Assembly: GCA_965603825.1 (NCBI GenBank)
Contig: CBFDEM010000018.1
Location: 434,001 to 498,000 of the forward strand
Length of the DNA stretch: 64,000 nt
Direction: 5' to 3'
Origin: Blepharisma stoltei ATCC 30299
Lineage: Eukaryota; Protista; Ciliophora
How positions within the stretch are numbered: the first letter of the stretch is position 1; each line of letters starts with the position of its first letter. A model generated the notes under the pieces. The model was given only the letters and a program-made list of their open reading frames with translations, made no database searches and was not told where the DNA came from. This document shows, one piece after another, positions 10,760 through 49,875 of the stretch. A program made the translations under genes and the position numbers.

Positions 10760-13453
10760 TTAAAATTCTTCATCCCAATTCGCAGGGATCTGTGCTTTTG
10801 ATTTGCTCGGCTGCATTGGCGTTTCTGCTGAAATTTCATCCCTCAAAATATTATCCAAGAAATTTTTCTTTGACTTCGCTGCCTTTGAAGCTTCCGACGT
10901 CAATGACCTCAATTTTGGCACATAAGGTGGCGTGATCCCTCTTGAAAACAATTTTTCCCACTTAAACCCTGACAAAAACTTGTGTTTTTTCAGCTTAGAA
11001 ATGCTTCCACCAGTCCTAGAAGCCGCTTTTACGCTCAGAAGTTGTGTGATAATCGATTTCAGTGACAAAGTATGCTTAATATTTGTAGGGAACACTAAAT
11101 TATGCTCGATAACTTTTTCGTAAACTTTATATGTATCTTCTTCATTTTCACCGAACGGAACAGTCCCAAATACAAACTCAAAAATCATGACACCTAAGCT
11201 TCACCAGTCGACAGCAGAGTTATAGCCATTCCCCATGATAACTTCAGGGGCCATATAATGAGGAGTTCCTACCGTTGTGTAAGTGCGGCCGTTGACGATT
11301 TTAGCGATTCCGAAATCAATAAGTTTTGGGTATCCTTCTTCATCAATCATTATATTTTCAGGTTTTAAGTCTCTATATATAATTTCTCTTTTATGGAGAT
11401 ATTCAAGAATCACTACTAAACAAGCTGTATAAAACCTTGCATCATCTTCTTTTAGCAGCCCTAACTGCCTTAATACGTCAAATAAATCAATTCCTCTTAC
11501 ATATTCCATAAGGAAATAAATTCTTTTATTGTCTTTAAACGTCTTTACAAGCTTTACAATCATTGTATGGTCTAACTGCAGCAGAATTTTTCTTTCAAGA
11601 ACTAAGCTTTCATATATCCCATAAGCTACAATTTTGGCCCTTGGGACTGTTTTTAAAGCGTAAAACGCTCCTTTTTCTTTGTGGGCCATTAAATATACAT
11701 TCCCGAACATCCCTTTTCCAAGTGGTTTTATCATAACAAGCTGATCCAATGCTATAGTGTTATCTTGTAGCTCAATCCTTTTAAGTAGCTGTGTCCTCAT
11801 ACTAAAGTCTATAATACTTTCAAAGTCATTTTTCTCTAGTGTCCAGCACGTCACGTTGCCTTCAGCTACAACCGTCGCGCTTCTTCTTTCATTGAATAAA
11901 ATTGACCTTTCTCCAAAATAATCATGTATAGTAAGAGTCCTGACCTTTACATTTTCTTTGAAAATATTCACCCTTCCTGTTTTCACTATATACAAAGTAT
12001 CCCCTTCTTCGTTTTCTTGTACAATAGCTTGTCCATCCCTGAAATCAACAATTCTTAAAACATGTATCAAAGCTTTCAATCTGTCTTTAGGCAAGTTTCT
12101 AAGCAGTTGGACCTGTTTTAAAACAACTAAAGCAGCATTATTATTTGTAGCAGGCACAACGACGCCGCCTAAGCATTTTTCAAATTCCTCTTTAGAGATT
12201 TGGGCTATATCCACCTCAGAATCTGCCACATAATTTTCTATATTATTTTGGGTACAAGTTTGGTTAATTTTATCGTCTCCTATACATGCAAAAGTTTCGT
12301 AAACCCCTAGAGGCCCTCTTACCCTCCCTTTCATAATTATACACAATTTAGCACCTTGTAAAGAATTTTTGGATACCACAACTTCGCCTGGGCTGAATTT
12401 GGCGATTTTCATAGTGTCCATCATTTGTTGGGATTGGTCTTTTGTGAGGTTTTTTAATGATTCACTTTTTTCTATAGCTTTTTTTTGGATATTTCTATAT
12501 ATAACTTGTTGCAAATTCTCCCCTAAAGCTTCAAGCAAGCTTCCTCTTCCTATGCACAGTACTTTTACAGCTCCTACACAGGTAATTGTCGCTGTCCTTT
12601 TCGAATTATACAGCAAAGCTTGTTCACCAAAGAAATCCCCTTTGACCATCTGCCTAATCTCGACCCCATCTTTTGTACATGTAACAACGCCTTCTTTTAT
12701 TATATAAAATAAATCTCCAACTTCTCCTTCTTTCACAATGGTCTGTCTGTTATCCCATTTTTGTGTTGTGATAGAAGCAAGTAATGCTTCTTTCTGTTGG
12801 GTGGTTAAAATTTCAAAAATTGGGACACTATTGATAAATAATTTATTTTCTTCATAATTCATCCTATTTACAGCTTCGACTGCTTGCTTAAAGGTCATTC
12901 GGTCGACCCCTCACAAGGTCGATTTTTGTGCTGATTTAATTGTGGCTGTCCTTGGTTTGTCATCTAGCAGTGCAAGTTCTCCAAAGCTGGTGCCTGGCTT
13001 AAGCATGTTCTGTCGAATCCCGTTAACAATCACTTCAAGCCTACCTGTGGCTAATACAAAAAAATATTTCCCAGGCATTCCTTGTTGGGTTATAACCTCG
13101 CCTGAGTTAACTGAAAAGTGCTTCATTTGGTCTATAATATGCCGTTGACTATCTTCATCAAGATTCCTTAGGATAAAATGACTATTCAAAGCATTATTAA
13201 TCATCCCTATATCTTCGGCTGTTTTAGGACGTGCTGTTATGACGGCTGTCACGGCTTCGTTGACTTCTTTTACTTTTTGCCAAGTCACAGCAGCTATTTT
13301 TGGCTTTGATTTACGTTGGGCTGAGGATTTTGGCTCCTTTGTTTCTTCGTTAACTCCTTCAAAGCTTATAATAGGTTTGGAAGAAATAGGCTGAGTGGAG
13401 TTGCTGGGGTCGATTATTTCTTTTTGGAAGCATCCATTGCAAGCGTTACCCAT
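10760..13453 (-). CDS. cGMP-dependent protein kinase (PKG) paralog 1, 897 aa, 2 UGA
   Basis: MGNAC acylation motif, several cNMP domains (FGELALL..PRTAT, FGEQALL, FGERS), AGC kinase (GKGMFG, YRDLKPEN, DFG, GTPHYMAPE), WDEEF end. Confidence 0.93.
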
Positions 13454-13674: not shown

Positions 13675-15840
13675 TTATTTTCTTAGGTTTTCACTAGCTT
13701 TATGAAGAATTGCAACAAGCTTGAGCATACCTTCAGGGGTCTGTTCAATCTTCTTCGATGCTATCTGATTCTTTAGCTTTTTACAATAATCCTGCAGTTT
13801 CACATACTTTTCTTCCTCATCTAAAATCTGCCTCTGCAATTCTCCATTTTCTTGCTCTTTTTCCTCGTTCATCTTTTTAAGCCCCTCATTAATCACTTTC
13901 ATCTTATTAAGCTCCTCCTTATATCTCTGAAAATCTTCTAATATTTCTTCATCAGTATTCCCCCTCTTCAAAAGTTCAATTTCTCTTTCATTTCACGATT
14001 TTTCCAACAATTGTTCTTTTTCTCTCATTTCTTTGGCTTCTAGCTGAAGATTTTCTTTTTGTGTCAGAATTTCTTGGCAATTTTGATAAAGTTGGTCATA
14101 TTCTTTTGCCAATTCTTCTTGATTTTTTTGGATTTCTAACACCTTATGCTGTTCATTGAAATAAGAATTTTCTAAGCTCAAGCATCTTTTTCTCTCTGAA
14201 ATTAATTCTTCTTCATACTGTCCTAGCTGAAACTTAAGAAGCTCTATATCTTTGTGTGTTTCTGCGAACTCTCTTTGATGACTAAACACGTCTTCAATTA
14301 AACACAGATACCTTTCTGTGGTATTTTGATTTTCTTCAGACCTTGCCTCTTTTTCTGAAAATGCTTGTAATTGCTGGTTTAAATAGTCATTTTCGTTTTC
14401 TAGCTCAATTTTTTTTTGCTTTATTTCATTTAACTCCTGCTGAAGAATTTCAATAAAACCTTTTTTTTCTTCAATAAATTGTAAGGCGGATTGGTATTCT
14501 TCATTTGTTTTGCATTGATAAAACTCGATTCTGCATTTTTCGTTCTCTTCTTTGAGGTTTTTATTTTCAGCTTCTAAGGCTTCTTTAGTTTCTTTCCATT
14601 CTTTTTGGGTTGATTTTAGCTCTCTATAAAGGTCGATTTTTTCTCTGATGAGTTTTTCTACTTGTTTAGTGTTATTTGACATGTTTTCGAAAAGGAGTTT
14701 TTCTTTTTCATGGACGATTTTTTGCATTTGGTGAAGTTCTTCTTTGATTTTGTTAACCTCAGCCCTTAATCTGTTGTTTACTTCTTTTTCATTGTCAGAA
14801 AGCTCTTTCGTAGTTTTTATTTCTTTTTCTTTTTGCAGCAATGCTTTCCTGAGTGAAGCAATTTCAGGTTGAGCATTGATAAAATTTTCTTGGGTAAATT
14901 GGAGCTGTTGAGCTGATATACCTTTTTCATATTTAATATTTTCAAGCTCAGCTTTTAATTTTTCTAGGGTTGCTGATAAAGAATTTTTTGCAGCATTAGT
15001 TGCCAAAACTGTTTGCTCTAGCTCAGCATTTTTCTTTTTCATCTCAATAATCTCTTTTTCACTTTGTGCATAAAATCTTTCAAGATCTGAAAATTTTTCA
15101 ATTCCAGTTTTATACACATTTATTGGTGTTTCTTGATATTGTTTTACTTTTTCTTTATACATCTGCAATTCTTTCCCAAGATTTTCTATTTCTTCAATAA
15201 GCAATTTTTCGTCTTGCGAATATTCGTCAATTTTGTTTTCTTTTTTGGCTATTTCTTTTATAAATGCAAATAAATCTTTCTTTAGCGATTCTCCATCAAT
15301 TATTTTGGCATTTGTAAGAAAATTGTTTTGGAGCTTGAACTTTTGGTTCTCAACGATAACTTGACGGATTTGCTCTATTAAATAGTCATTGACGTTTTTT
15401 ACTATGCCATTCTCTTCAAGTATTGCAGACAAATACTCCTTTGTTCTCTGCAGCTCATCTATAGCAGCTTCATACTCTGGGACTAAATTTTCATGGTCAA
15501 ATTTTAGGTTATTGTACGTGATGATTAAGCTTTCATAGTTTTCTTTCTGCTGAGCTAATATTGGAGCTTTAGCTTCATAACTGTGTATATATTTTTCCAA
15601 TTTAGCCTTTAAATCATCAATTTCTTCTTGTGAGTTCAAATATTTTGACCCGAATTCTGTGAGTTTTGATGTAAGATAAGTGAATTGCTCGTTTCTGTCT
15701 TTTGGGTAATTTATAACTGGAATATTCATGTCTTCAGTTTCTGGGATCATTGCTTCTTGGTTTTCATTAGAGCTTTCTAGCTCAATTGTGTTTTCTTGAT
15801 GGTTATTTTTGTTTGATACCCTGTGCTTGAGCAAAGACAT
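13675..15840 (-). CDS. Long coiled-coil protein (721 aa), 1 UGA
   Basis: E/K/Q-rich heptads; two track ORFs joined across TGA 13993. Confidence 0.8.
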
Positions 15841-16115
15841 TTTATTATGGAATTAAGAAATGGAACCCCAAGCACTAATTTTGCATATACTTGAGAAATT
15901 TATTATTTTATATTTTGATTAGTATATATGCTCACAAAATTTTACATTTAAATCCATAGAAAAGGATAGCATAATAACGTAATTTTATATAATCAATACA
16001 AATTCATGGAAAAATATAATAGCTGTTATTAAAAACAAACTAATAGAAAGCATTATATTTTAAATAAAATTTGGCCATAAATAAATAAAAAATGTTATTA
16101 CAATCTATGATTCTC

Positions 16116-17384
16116 CTAATTTTCGTCACTTTCTCCTCCGACTTGAATTTTAACCTGAGCATCTTCTCTATCTTCAATCCTCTGCAAATTATCAGGAATT
16201 TCCCCTGATAGCAAAGATGGATACGTAAAATTCAACGTTGTGTTAAATCCAAAAAATGGAGAGTCATTTCGAATCAAATTTGGCAGGTTAGAAACAGGCG
16301 AATTTAAATCATTATCACTTTGATTGAAATTATTGCGATTTGCATTATTTCTGTGATCAGTTCCATTGCATGGACTATTACCTCAGATATCAGGGATTTG
16401 AAAAGGTCCATTTTGATTAGTAGAGTTGCCAGGTGGACTATAAGAATGAGTGGTATTTACAGATGTATCATTAGAGTTGCCTGTATTATTGGATGGTCCA
16501 GTTTGAGGATCGCTTGAATTTGATGACTGAGAGCTGCCGTTTGAATCTGTAGAGTTTGTATCTGATTGCTGATTAGTAGCGTTTGAATCTGAATGGCTAG
16601 TAGATGAATTATCCTTTATATTATTTTCTGAGTTGGATGTATTAGAGTTTGTAGAATTTGAGTTTTGATTACTAGAAGTAGAGTTAGTTCCAGATCAATT
16701 AGAAGTATTATTGCTAGCTTGAGAAGCATTTGAAGGATTTGTGTTATTTGAATCAGGAATATTTGACTCAGATCCATTATCAGTACAATTTGGCTGAGAA
16801 GAATTAGCATTAGAATCGTTTGGTATCGACGAAGTTTGGTTTGATAACTCGTTTTTAGTTGTATTCACTTCGGAGTTCGATGAATTATTTTGCAAGATTG
16901 AATCTGATGCGTTATTATTGGTATGATTTGCTTCTTGGCTATTTGATTGATTGTTGTTAGAAGTTGAATTTGATGGCTTTGAACAGTTATTGCTTTCATT
17001 ATTTTGCTGATTATTTATAGTAGTGCAATCAGTATTGTTGGCCTTCGAGCAACATGTAGGATCTTTGCTATTTGTTGGAGCCTCATTGCAATAGCAGTGG
17101 CATCGGCAAAGATCAATATTTTCGCACTCACAGCTGCATGCACAATTTCCAGGACCTCAAGTTCGTGTTTCAATTAGTCGTAAATTATCAGCTTGATCAT
17201 TGTTGCTAATATTAGTAGAATTATTGTAAGAATCAACAAAATTGTAATTTCCATCAGTATATCCATGATCACAAGTGCATACATTTCGTTCTAAAAGAGG
17301 ATCCTTAACAAAATCTTCGAAATTATCATCTTTCCCAAAAGTTAAACTAACCGAGCATAGAAAAATAAATAGAAAAATCTTCAT
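16116..17384 (-). CDS. Secreted Cys-cluster, Asn/Ser/Thr-rich glycoprotein (422 aa), 3 UGA
   Basis: Signal peptide MKIFLFIFLCSVSLTFG; CACSCEC..LCRCHCYC; long N/S/T tract with many N-x-S/T sequons; open frame to TAG at 16116-16118 when TGA=W. Confidence 0.8.
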
Positions 17385-17570
17385 CAGAAAAAAAATAATA
17401 TGTCGACAAAAATATCCATTTATTTAATTAAATCGAAAATAACGGTATTTTATACGTTTAAAATAAGAAAAATCTTAAATGTAATTAAAGTATAATAAAT
17501 ATGCAATCTTCGATCTTAAAAGAGTTAATTTAATTCAATAGGTGATTTTAAGAAAAACTCAATCAGAATA

Positions 17571-17584
17571 TGTCCCATAATAAA
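17571..17584 (+). promoter_or_regulatory. Putative snRNA proximal/upstream sequence element (TGTCCCATAATAAA)
   Basis: CCCATAA core ~55 nt upstream of the inferred U1 start, resembling the upstream element of ciliate snRNA genes as recalled. Confidence 0.4.
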
Positions 17585-17627
17585 ATAATTCAAAAAGTTA
17601 TTATAAAAAGAAATATGAAAATTATAT

Positions 17628-17790
17628 TCAATTACAATGGTTGGAGTGAATCATTGATCAATCAATACAATCACTTAGGGTGGAGCAGATCCTTTGAACA
17701 CTGATTTCTGTAAAGCCCTATAGCTTCCCGCTTGGGTTGCTGACTACTAAATTTCTGGTAGTGGGGATGTGTGCTTGCCGCCTCCCCGCC
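17628..17790 (+). ncRNA. U1: U1 spliceosomal snRNA with divergent 5' end
   Basis: ~160 nt; SL1 AGUGA/UCACU with GAUCA loop; SL2 UAGGGU/GCCCUA; SL3 UAGC..CCC-GCUU-GGG..GCUG; Sm site AAUUUCUGG followed by UAGUGGGGA..UCCCC SL4, as in the U1 3' end. Confidence 0.85.
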
Positions 17791-17891
17791 TTCAATAATT
17801 AACGAAATCATACCTAAGAACCTATTTTAAATTTTATACTAAAATATTCATAAAAATTCTATAATGATGACAAGAAATCTCCCTGTCATTG

Positions 17892-18737
17892 ATGACACTA
17901 CTCATCCTTGCACTGAATAAAATAAGTACCGACGAAGCCAAAAACCAAGACCCAGATCCAGTCCTAGTTATTTATCCTCCAGACTCTAAATCCAGCATCA
18001 CTATCAGAGAGTCAGATTTTTCTCGACTAAACCCAATTGAATTTTTGAACGACAATTTAGTTGATTTTTTTATCAAATATTTCATCACAGAAAGCAACAA
18101 AGACAATTTTTTCGCATTCAGCAGTTTTTTCTATGTCTCAATCGTAGAAAGTGGCTATGATAAAGTTTTGAAGTGAAATAAAGGCTGCGACATTTTTGAA
18201 AAAGATTTTTGGATTATCCCAATCGCTGACAATAATCATTGATTACTTTTAATTGTCGCTTATCCTCAGTATGTTTTTATAGAAAATTCTGAAATTCAAC
18301 CAGCGATTTTATTATTTGATTCTCTAAGTTTTGGAATGGAAGATCTGGCCCATATGGTCAGAATTTATATAGGGCTTGAATGAGCACAAAAACAAGGGCT
18401 GGAATATGACTCAGTGCAAGAAGACGATATTCCACTAGTTATCCCGTCAGTTCCTCAGCAAAACAATTGATGGGATTGTGGGATTTATGTGATTAATTAT
18501 GCCAAAAAATTTATTGAAAGCCCTGAACCATTTTTGCTGGATTTAAATTGTGAAGAAATTTTTGATATGGATGAATTTAATAAGGGTAGGTGGATTTATA
18601 AGAATATTTTGAACCAGCTAGGAACAGGAAATATTGTAAAAGAAGGGGTCAATATTTATCTGAAAAAATCAAAGAGAAGACATAGGAGGAAGCCACAAAG
18701 GCCGTTAGATGAAGAATTTTATTATGAAAATAACTAA
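17892..18737 (+). CDS. Ulp/SENP SUMO protease (peptidase C48), 4 UGA
   Basis: FLNDNLVDFF, FSSFFY, IPI..NH[W]LL, FDSL, PQQNN[W]WDCGIYV catalytic H-D-C; start codon uncertain. Confidence 0.9.
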
Positions 18738-19224
18738 TAAAAACTCAAAATTTTTTACTTATTCCTTTAATTTTCTAGTGTTTTTTAAAAATTAATTTTT
18801 GAATCTCTTTACTTTTTCTCACAGGATTTCTTAAAAAGCCCGTTTTTCTTAATTCTGATCAATAGCAAATCTGTTCCATCTGTCTGATCAGTTAAAAATG
18901 GAACCATATTCATATAAACTTATGGAATAGTTCCTACATGTTGTTACTCAAGATCTAAGCAAATTCCCATAGCCAGGTCTTATCTAATATAATCGCATAA
19001 AATTATTCAGAAATACAACAAACACAACAAATAATAAATAAATTTAAAATCTTCAAAAGTAACTTATATTAAACTTTCTAAATATGATAATCATACTTGG
19101 GATAAGAGAAGTGCTTTTAATCTTTTTTCTTGTAATTGAATTCACCACATTTAGTCTAAAATAACTATTTTTTACTTAATTTTATGACTTAAAATGGTGG
19201 CCATCATTAATTTAAAAAAATAAA

Positions 19225-48456: not shown

Positions 48457-49875
48457 TTATAAATCTTGTTTCTTTTTTTCAATAAAATCAATAATAGAGC
48501 CTTCGGAAAGCCCTTTCTCATAGGTTATCTCTATAGCTTCCGTGTTTTTAATAAAATAAAACGAAGGGACCTGGGCTGGACTTATTGTTTTCGGCAAGCC
48601 ATTTTTAGATGCATTAATCTGGGCAATATTAACTTCAATTTTCTTGTTTTCCTTCAATTTCTTAATAAATAATTTTGCTTTTTCACAGCCTTCGCAATCA
48701 TCTGCAAACACCAACAAAAGAAACTCAATTTTAGGTTCATTTATTGCTTTTATCAGTGAAGTTCCTACATAATTTATTATTCCATCATTGTCAATAGGTT
48801 TTGGCAATTCTGATTTGAGGCTCGGGGAAATTTTATTATTTTCGAAATCTTTGATGGTGCTAGGAACCAAACCAGTGCTCAGTACTCCATGATATCCTAT
48901 TTTTTCCTTTTCTAAAATAAATAAATGAGTAGAGTTATCAATTGCTAATATAGGTAAATTCTATATAATAATTACATTCTTATCATATCCATATTCTGCT
49001 AAAAATCATGAATAATCAGCATACCTTGCGATGGCTATTTTATATTTTTCGCTATCAATTCTTAATAATATCTGAACTATATCCTTAAAATTGTTCTCTT
49101 CTTTTGAAGGAGAAATATCAGTAAATAAAGTAATTGAAGTTTTTCTTTCTGAAAGCAGCCCTTCTGTAAATGGAGTAAGCCATAATACTTTTCCAAAATA
49201 ATTCTTATAAATTTCATCTGCTAGTTTATCAATATCATCAATATTTTTTATTTTATAAGGATCTGATAAAGGATTATTTCCCAAAATACTTGGCCTAAGC
49301 AGTATGACTCCGTTTTCTATGTTAAAGTGTTTTGCAATGTCTTGGCTAAAAGTGTATCCGAAGCGATAAAATTGTTTAGCTGAAACAGCAAGACGGATGA
49401 ATTCCTCTTTGGCTTTATTGCCACTAGTAGAAAATACTCCTAAAACAAGCCCCTCAAATTTTAAATCATCCTCAAATTCTTTCAGAGTATAATATTCAGT
49501 TATTGGCTTAGCCATTCTACTTGTAGTGGCTCGAATTTCTTCAGGATCTATAGATCATAAATAAGCGAAATGATTTGTATCACCTTTTAAGGTACAAATT
49601 ATATGAGGTAAGCTAGTTATCGAAAACTCATTCTTTATCTGATCTTTATCTTCTTCTGGGATTTGATAGAGGCCAAAAACTGAATCAGTGGTAAATTCGC
49701 TATTCAGTAATGAATCTCTTAATGGCCTATAAGAATTAGAATCTTTGAGGGAAAAAACTAAAAACCGATTCTTATTAATGCTTTCACTAAGGAAAGCTCT
49801 TGCAACTTTTATATCTTGTATGTCAACTACTCCCACTACTACCTTTAGAAGAAATAGCAAAACCAAATAAATCAT
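48457..49875 (-). CDS. PDI-like ER protein (single CEGC site, KQDL end), 2 exons, 2 UGA
   Basis: Signal peptide, thioredoxin-fold spacing, LKSELPKP, FADDCEGC, INASKN, KQDL. Confidence 0.78.
48961..48975 (-). other. 15-nt intron GTAATTATTATATAG
   Basis: Removes an in-frame TAG between PDI-like segments; A at position 10. Confidence 0.85.

Follow-up and report, generated by a model that had tools for sequence, protein, structure and literature searches.

Human variant U1 (vU1) snRNAs are encoded by paralogous U1 genes that have their own snRNA promoters and are transcribed. The 5' arms and protein-binding loops of these RNAs are altered; how well they can splice is uncertain, and their processing, capping and snRNP assembly have been shown (PMC3561869, PMC10870369, PMC5159530). 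In Entamoeba and Mastigamoeba, the altered 5' arm of U1 complements an atypical donor consensus. The altered RNA serves these organisms as their U1, and their donors are almost all alike (bioRxiv 10.1101/2022.06.08.495308). Published surveys of ciliates describe their snRNAs only as conserved (PMC13685798, PMC9505925), and the U1 of Stentor coeruleus is canonical (PMC9505925). Because tiny introns with GUAAWW donors are reported to be ancestral to heterotrichs (PMC13685798), and a canonical U1 is present in Stentor, in Blepharisma stoltei and in a relative of the latter, these introns have been spliced with a canonical U1 throughout. The GUAAWW donors of heterotrich 15-nt introns pair with the canonical U1 arm over little beyond GUAA, which poses the question of whether U1 has adapted to them; the results below indicate that it has not.

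Here we describe a locus in Blepharisma stoltei that is a real variant U1 snRNA gene, lineage-specific, promoter-intact and transcribed. It adds to the published surveys a variant U1 paralogue whose promoter is intact, whose locus is transcribed, whose origin can be dated and whose rate of change differs strongly from that of its twin. The locus shares with the human vU1 genes a paralogous origin, an snRNA-type promoter, transcription, and changes in the 5' arm and a protein-binding loop with uncertain consequences for splicing. It differs from them in being single, in having arisen from a large duplication, in belonging to a ciliate with 15-nt introns, and in being known from the gene and from RNA contigs. 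Compared with Entamoeba and Mastigamoeba, the altered arm is likewise complementary to the commonest donor sequence; however, in Blepharisma a canonical U1 persists, the GUAAWW donors are degenerate, and there is no net gain in pairing.

The window analysed here is a 64,000-nt stretch (contig 18, 434001-498000) of the B. stoltei genome, the MAC version of which has been described (PMC9942806). The Rfam U1 model (RF00003) matched positions 17628-17788 of the window (+) over its full length (model positions 1-166) with a score of 55.9 bits, and the E-value was 2e-13 in a search of 401 nt and 5e-12 in the covariance-model search of the whole genome. The U1-type element proposed in the first-pass annotation is thus present and lies far beyond chance expectation. 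Because its score is below the RF00003 gathering score of 69.5 bits, a default Rfam scan of the window at the gathering threshold is blank, and the match surfaces only under E-value thresholds; annotation pipelines should therefore be used with caution for genes of this kind.

The U1 searches covered the whole assembly (41.46 Mb in 64 contigs), and the covariance-model and DNA searches agree that it contains exactly two U1 genes. The second gene, on contig 29 (114848-115008, -), scored 87.3 bits with the arm UCACUUACCUGG; it carries the canonical ACUUACCUGG where the window copy reads AAUUACAAUGG. The two copies are 88% identical across 161 nt, and the GC content is 0.45 for the window copy and 0.52 for the canonical one. 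Asked whether every U1 copy shares the variant arm, as the first-pass annotation supposed it might, the genome-wide Rfam search returned one copy of two. That annotation had also named a separate, expressed canonical U1 as the observation that would speak against its proposal, and the contig-29 gene, which is represented among the RNA contigs, is exactly this.

The arm itself was read correctly at first pass. At the predicted 5' end of the RNA, the variant 5' splice-site recognition arm is UCAAUUACAAUGG (17628-17640, +), and the corresponding sequence is UCACUUAC-CUGG in the canonical copy and AUACUUACC-UGG in the Rfam model. The changes are C to A facing donor position +5, C to A facing position -1, and one inserted A; that is, in place of the U1 arm ACUUACCU the window copy has AAUUACAA, with two substitutions and one insertion. 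The core UUAC, which faces G1-A4 of the donor, is retained.

The remaining parts named in the first-pass annotation, namely the GAUCA in the SL1 loop, SL2, SL3, the Sm site and the GGGGA/UCCCC stem of SL4, were all found, and the variant resembles canonical U1 (RF00003, the contig-29 copy and that of Stentor coeruleus, PMC9505925) in its length of 161 nt and in possessing helix H, SL1-SL4 and the Sm site. The 5' strand of helix H (17640-17643, +) pairs with 17744-17747 and is the same in both copies, with three of four pairs forming in each. The proposed fold needs a caveat at SL1 (17644-17676, +), in which the lower stem is intact and the upper stem retains just two of five pairs. The 10-nt U1-70K-binding loop reads GAUCAAUCAA instead of the canonical GAUCAAGCAG, so that GAUCAA is kept and two of the last four bases are altered. 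When forced into the canonical fold, SL1 has a predicted energy of -2.4 kcal/mol in the window copy versus -8.4 kcal/mol in the canonical copy, and an alternative 5-bp helix in the window copy reaches -6.5 kcal/mol. We considered whether the latter is a remodelled SL1 (a new helix AUUGA/UCAAU arising from three changes) and rejected this idea, because among random AT-biased mutants 38% fold no worse. In SL2 (17677-17719, +), the loop is the same as in the canonical copy, one G.U pair has become A-U, and one U.G pair beside the loop has become U.U. SL3 (17721-17742, +) shows one C-G pair changed to U.G, one pair lost, and one A deleted in the internal loop. The Sm site, AAAUUUCUGG at 17749-17758 (+), comprises the AAUUUCUGG annotated at 17750-17758, lies between the junction and SL4 with the form AAUUUNUGG, and is identical in both B. 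stoltei copies and in a related heterotrich. In SL4 (17763-17787, +; GGGGA/UCCCC plus GUG/CGC) all eight pairs are kept, and all four differences fall at unpaired positions. Overall, the four-way junction and SL4 are present, with 34 of 40 drawn pairs forming in the window copy versus 39 of 40 in the canonical copy; three of the five pairs lost are in the upper part of SL1.

The regulatory sequences of the variant gene are those of an snRNA gene. The upstream sequence element (USE) TCCCATAA (17573-17580, +) lies 55 nt before the RNA; its motif TCCCWTAA is found at -55 or -56 of the U4, U5, both U1 and both U2 genes, and in U6 it lies at -61. Its counterpart in other ciliates is AAACCCATAA, the snRNA/snoRNA USE of Tetrahymena and Paramecium (PMC3273799). 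Fifteen nucleotides of the USE region, GTCCCATAATAAAAT, are identical at the window locus and at the U1 locus of the related heterotrich. The TATA-like box TTATTATAAAAAG (17598-17610, +), at about -30, is the same at the canonical U1 locus and has 12 of 13 nt in common with the relative, whose locus cannot be aligned in the spacer around the box. A 3'-box-like element, CCTTCAATAA (17789-17798, +), also follows canonical U1 in the same sequence, and motifs of the CTTCAA/TTCAAT type occur 3' of U2a, U4 and U5 as well. The flanks of the two U1 genes can be aligned in three blocks only, GTCCCATAA (with TCCC at -55), the TATA-like box and the 3' element. In the approximately 38 nt of promoter and 3' motifs, the window copy shows 0 changes, and about 4 would be expected at the rate of the RNA body. 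As an observation of more general use, TCCCWTAA at a fixed distance is common to all spliceosomal snRNA genes of B. stoltei, most of which also have CTTCAA/TTCAAT directly 3'; together these motifs provide a usable signature for unannotated Pol II/III small-RNA genes in this organism.

The variant U1 locus is transcribed. The RNA evidence consists of contigs assembled from four small runs (X1-X4) of one 2022 study, made from poly(A)-type libraries, as seen in the patchy cover, the zero depth at 15985-17560 and a non-templated A run at 18759. Exact contig cover begins within the U1 body, crosses the downstream protein gene and ends at the non-templated poly(A) (17648-18759). The individual contigs span 17648-17902 in X1, 17668-17866 in X2, 17668-18759 followed by AAAAAAAAA in X3, and 17674-18704 in X4, all with 0 mismatches, and the genome has no A run after 18759. 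The contigs start 20-46 nt inside the U1 body and pass its 3' end, continuing into the downstream protein gene in two runs; contigs of this kind give neither the strand nor the mature 5' end. No contig in the four runs starts upstream of 17648 and, thus, of the predicted snRNA start. X1 and X2 also contain a contig of canonical U1, recognisable from 14 differences and from the 3' flank that it shares with contig 29; much like the variant contigs, it is truncated at the 5' end and extended past the 3' end. The word depth in X1 and X2 was 6.9 and 4.8 for the canonical copy versus 4.7 and 3.6 for the variant, which is a measure of contig depth and not of the mature snRNA level. In X1, the downstream mRNA has contigs with a depth of about 179, about 40-fold above that of the contig containing U1 (4.7), from which they are separate; the downstream mRNA therefore has its own start. 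Variant U1 is probably transcribed from its own promoter.

The downstream protein gene has its ATG at 17892 and its stop codon at about 18735, with poly(A) added at 18759, about 20 nt past the stop. The protein shows H...D...Q...C motifs reminiscent of C48/Ulp proteases, and a Pfam search with two TGA-free pieces of the gene assigned it to no family; with motifs as the sole indication, we do not claim a C48/Ulp-like protease identity. On the other side of the U1 gene, the region 16119-17384 (-) encodes a signal-peptide-bearing, extremely Ser/Asn-rich protein whose start is 244 nt upstream of variant U1. This gene has no RNA contig cover in the four runs.

The origin of the two copies can be read from their surroundings. 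Genes flanking both U1 loci are paralogous, with 70-99% amino-acid identity and a four-fold-site difference of about 0.50. For comparison we used a related heterotrich (contigs from Logan SRR24908292), which was found through the protein gene just downstream of variant U1. The U1 of this relative (L146:4629-4789; 90.9 bits) has the canonical arm UUACUUACCUGG. Upstream of it, the genes are collinear with contig 29, and downstream it adjoins the homologue of the gene that follows variant U1 in the window, a gene that has been lost from contig 29. A second contig of the relative, reached through the cGMP-dependent kinase (PKG), interleaves genes of which B. stoltei now has some in the window alone and others on contig 29 alone. 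In gene content and order, this is the pattern of a large duplication that would have occurred after the split from the relative and been followed by alternate gene loss, leaving fractionated duplicates. The 88% identity of the two B. stoltei RNAs, the location of both in duplicated, fractionated regions, and the synteny of the relative's U1 establish that the window copy descends from a U1 gene.

Gene order and distances are the basis for placing the duplication after the speciation. A single kinase of the PKG pair's type was found in the relative; its identity is 79% with each of the two B. stoltei paralogues, which share 89% with each other. The PKG tree, which was built from a translation with TGA as Trp (in-frame TGA encodes Trp here), does not separate the duplication fork from the speciation fork. 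Ordering the two events by four-fold sites was also tried and rejected, because the values of 0.50 and 0.56 are too near saturation. An MMETSP transcript is 98% identical to the kinase in the window. When we looked for an orthologue of the variant locus in the relative, the coiled-coil anchor matched only B. stoltei's own protein, and the PKG anchor led to the relative's 52-kb contig used above for gene order, which has no U1 within 10 kb. A metagenome pattern scan for the U1 of relatives yielded more than 118 loci, none with U1 features downstream, and all of them are therefore chance matches.

Several details of the compared regions (window 7600-36300, contig 29 95001-135000, and relative contigs L146/L147) illustrate the gene loss. 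The PKG gene (window 10763-13453) is retained in both duplicated regions. A coiled-coil protein gene (13678-15852) is present only in the window, and a TFIIB-like gene and others are present only on contig 29. Of the gene that follows variant U1, contig 29 keeps only a remnant of about 42 nt from the start region. The N-terminal domain of U1-70K (PF12220) has a single match in the genome (contig 10, 272331-272582, -) despite this duplication history, and both U1 RNAs would therefore share one U1-70K.

With the relative as the third sequence, the changes that separate the two copies can be assigned to a lineage. Across 162 aligned RNA columns, the variant alone differs at 18 sites, the canonical copy alone at 0 and the relative alone at 4, and all three differ at 1 site (Tajima's test, chi-square 18, p 2e-5). 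The 16 substitutions unique to the variant comprise 13 GC-to-AT changes, 1 AT-to-GC change and 2 A/T transversions. Three of the variant's changes are in the arm, six are in apical SL1, where the upper stem loses three of five pairs and the 10-nt loop is altered at two positions, and four are in SL4, all of them unpaired. No change falls in helix H, lower SL1, the SL2 loop or the Sm site. The two copies differ at 9 of the first 42 nt, a stretch spanning the arm and SL1. Differences between the copies are evenly spread, without a conversion tract.

The divergence of the U1 body is about 11%, compared with about 50% at four-fold sites of the neighbouring paralogues; the rate is about one third of the neutral one. 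When the 17 substitutions in 160 sites were compared with the expectation for one neutral lineage (per-lineage p of 0.2 to 0.3), the binomial p ranged from 0.001 to 4e-9. The divergence is far below that of a neutral lineage, and the variant is therefore under relaxed constraint rather than free of constraint. We found no structure-sparing signal beyond the low overall rate: seven of 17 substitutions are at paired positions, and about half of all positions are paired.

To relate the arm to its potential targets, we searched 264 kb, consisting of the window and a further 200 kb of the genome, for predicted introns. An earlier filter that accepted any GT..AG segment of 12-25 nt was too noisy and was abandoned in favour of GTA..AG segments whose removal joins two open frames. 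Under this criterion a length of 15 nt stands out, with 36 candidates versus about 8 at neighbouring lengths, and roughly 8 of the 36 are expected to be false. An A is present at position 10 in 33 of the 36, and position 10 is the published branch position (PMC13685798). The donor counts (n=36) are A 22, C 1, G 8 and U 5 at +4; A 11, C 5, G 4 and U 16 at +5; A 11, C 3, G 1 and U 21 at +6; and A 13, C 1, G 14 and U 8 at -1. The predicted donors thus have the form GUAAWW, in agreement with the B. undulans donor motif GTAAWWTTTATWTAG, GTAAWW (PMC13685798), and the commonest hexamer is GUAAUU (8/36).

The first-pass annotation had proposed that the arm was re-matched to such donors through compensatory co-evolution of U1 with 15-nt introns, giving a re-tuned spliceosome. 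Parts of this proposal stand. The arm does differ at the positions facing +5 and -1, and on the intron side it is perfectly complementary to GUAAUU over 6 nt; the two AAU|GUAAUU donors cited in the window exist, at 48975 (-) and about 30359 (+), and G at +5 is rare in the larger predicted set too (4/36). On the other hand, G at -1 is commoner than claimed (14/36), and no overall gain in pairing follows from the variant arm. Over positions -3 to +6 of the 36 donors, the mean number of Watson-Crick pairs is 5.56 with the variant arm versus 5.08 with the canonical arm, and the same calculation on mostly false GTA..AG decoys gives 4.98 versus 4.66, a similar margin. The duplex energy is better with the canonical arm in 23 of the 36 donors. 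The eight GUAAUU donors show no preference for U at -1, and the exon-side changes of the arm (the A facing -1 and the inserted A) match no donor preference. The fit of the variant arm is confined to +5, as expected of an A-rich arm in an AT-rich genome. Co-evolution of the kind proposed finds no support in these results, and the canonical U1 present in the same genome, in the relative and in Stentor speaks against it. Since the canonical arm is frozen in all three, recognition of the tiny introns is independent of a rewritten U1.

We conclude, with a probability of about 0.58, that variant U1 is a paralogue under relaxed constraint whose changes arose by drift, and not the product of a re-tuned spliceosome. 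The large duplication made two U1 copies, and its products then lost alternate genes. The contig-29 copy remained unchanged as canonical U1; it is most likely the one that recognises 5' splice sites, and it presumably carries out the bulk of splicing. The window copy is still transcribed and retains the promoter, the Sm site, the loop of SL2, SL4 and the 3' box. It has taken all 18 changes, mostly GC-to-AT, and evolves several-fold faster than its canonical twin and more slowly than neutral sequence. Three of these changes lie in the arm and three break the upper SL1 stem that bears the U1-70K-binding loop; the fit to GUAAUU is best seen as a by-product of AT-biased drift at arm positions facing the non-conserved +5 and -1. 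The locus may accordingly serve as a natural test case of a duplicated snRNA gene that is decaying while expressed or, less likely, as a protist counterpart of human vU1. With regulatory motifs unchanged and a rate only one third or so of neutral, the gene must still be under real selection, and a distinct function is possible. The arm, in which the UUAC core is kept and the changes face only variable donor positions, would also fit a working recogniser.

These considerations lend some weight to a specialised functional U1 snRNP, sub- or neo-functionalised for AU-rich donors of the UU|GUAAUU type in tiny introns and acting beside canonical U1, which we regard as a tentative alternative. It would account for the perfect 6-nt intronic match to the commonest hexamer in a genome whose donors have U at +5 in 16 of 36 cases and G in only 4, for the GTAAWW motif of B. 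undulans (PMC13685798), and for the transcription of a gene whose promoter and conserved RNA parts are intact at about a third of neutral divergence; human variant U1 (PMC3561869) and the co-evolved arms of Entamoeba (bioRxiv 10.1101/2022.06.08.495308) provide precedents. However, the upper part of SL1 and the U1-70K loop have suffered damage that nothing compensates, in an organism with one U1-70K gene, the exon-side changes fit no donor preference, and the pairing gain equals that on decoys, with duplex energy favouring the canonical arm in most donors. The substitution spectrum is also what AT-biased drift gives, and the alternative SL1 helix is unremarkable. A bolder form of the idea, in which Blepharisma runs two U1 snRNPs and the copy with the A-rich arm serves the GUAAUU donors of 15-nt introns, possibly without canonical U1-70K binding, seems to us rather doubtful; if true, it would represent a natural division of 5' splice-site recognition between two U1 paralogues in a protist. 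At the opposite extreme, the window copy could be a non-functional pseudogene, with RNA contigs that represent an extended 5' untranslated region or read-through and a low divergence that reflects past gene conversion. The score under the Rfam gathering threshold, the concentration of AT-biased changes on this copy, the broken SL1, and the two runs in which one contig joins this copy to the downstream mRNA as far as the poly(A) would all agree with such a reading. We consider it unlikely, however, because the USE, TATA-like box and 3' box carry none of the roughly 4 changes expected at the rate of the body, no contig starts upstream of the predicted snRNA start, and the canonical copy has the same contig pattern. 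Moreover, the X1 contig of U1 stands apart from those of an mRNA that has its own start, and the evenly spread differences leave no trace of a conversion tract. Least credible, to the point of being very improbable, is that the window copy is the organism's U1, rewritten for tiny-intron donors in a spliceosome re-tuned as a whole. The arithmetic of complementarity and the rarity of G at +5 are all that speak for it, against a canonical, higher-scoring and transcribed U1 in the same genome and a canonical U1 in the relative and in Stentor (PMC9505925). The other splicing RNAs give no sign of retuning either: the ACAGAGA of U6, the U-rich loop 1 of U5 and the GUAGUA of both U2 genes are all canonical.

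The degree of constraint on canonical U1 in this group can be gauged from the relative, whose U1 differs from the canonical U1 of B. stoltei at 5 of 161 positions; neighbouring protein genes of the relative are 52-75% identical, with four-fold sites near saturation. U2 snRNA is likewise encoded by two diverged genes in B. stoltei, on contig 64 (37294-37484) and contig 24 (257359-257550), with scores of 160.1 and 127.2 bits, respectively. The weaker copy diverges in stem-loop I and in the 3' half. The same duplication may have produced this second pair of snRNA genes, again with unequal rates of change, and both U2 genes retain the GUAGUA branch-point box and the upstream element TCCCTTAACAAAAA.
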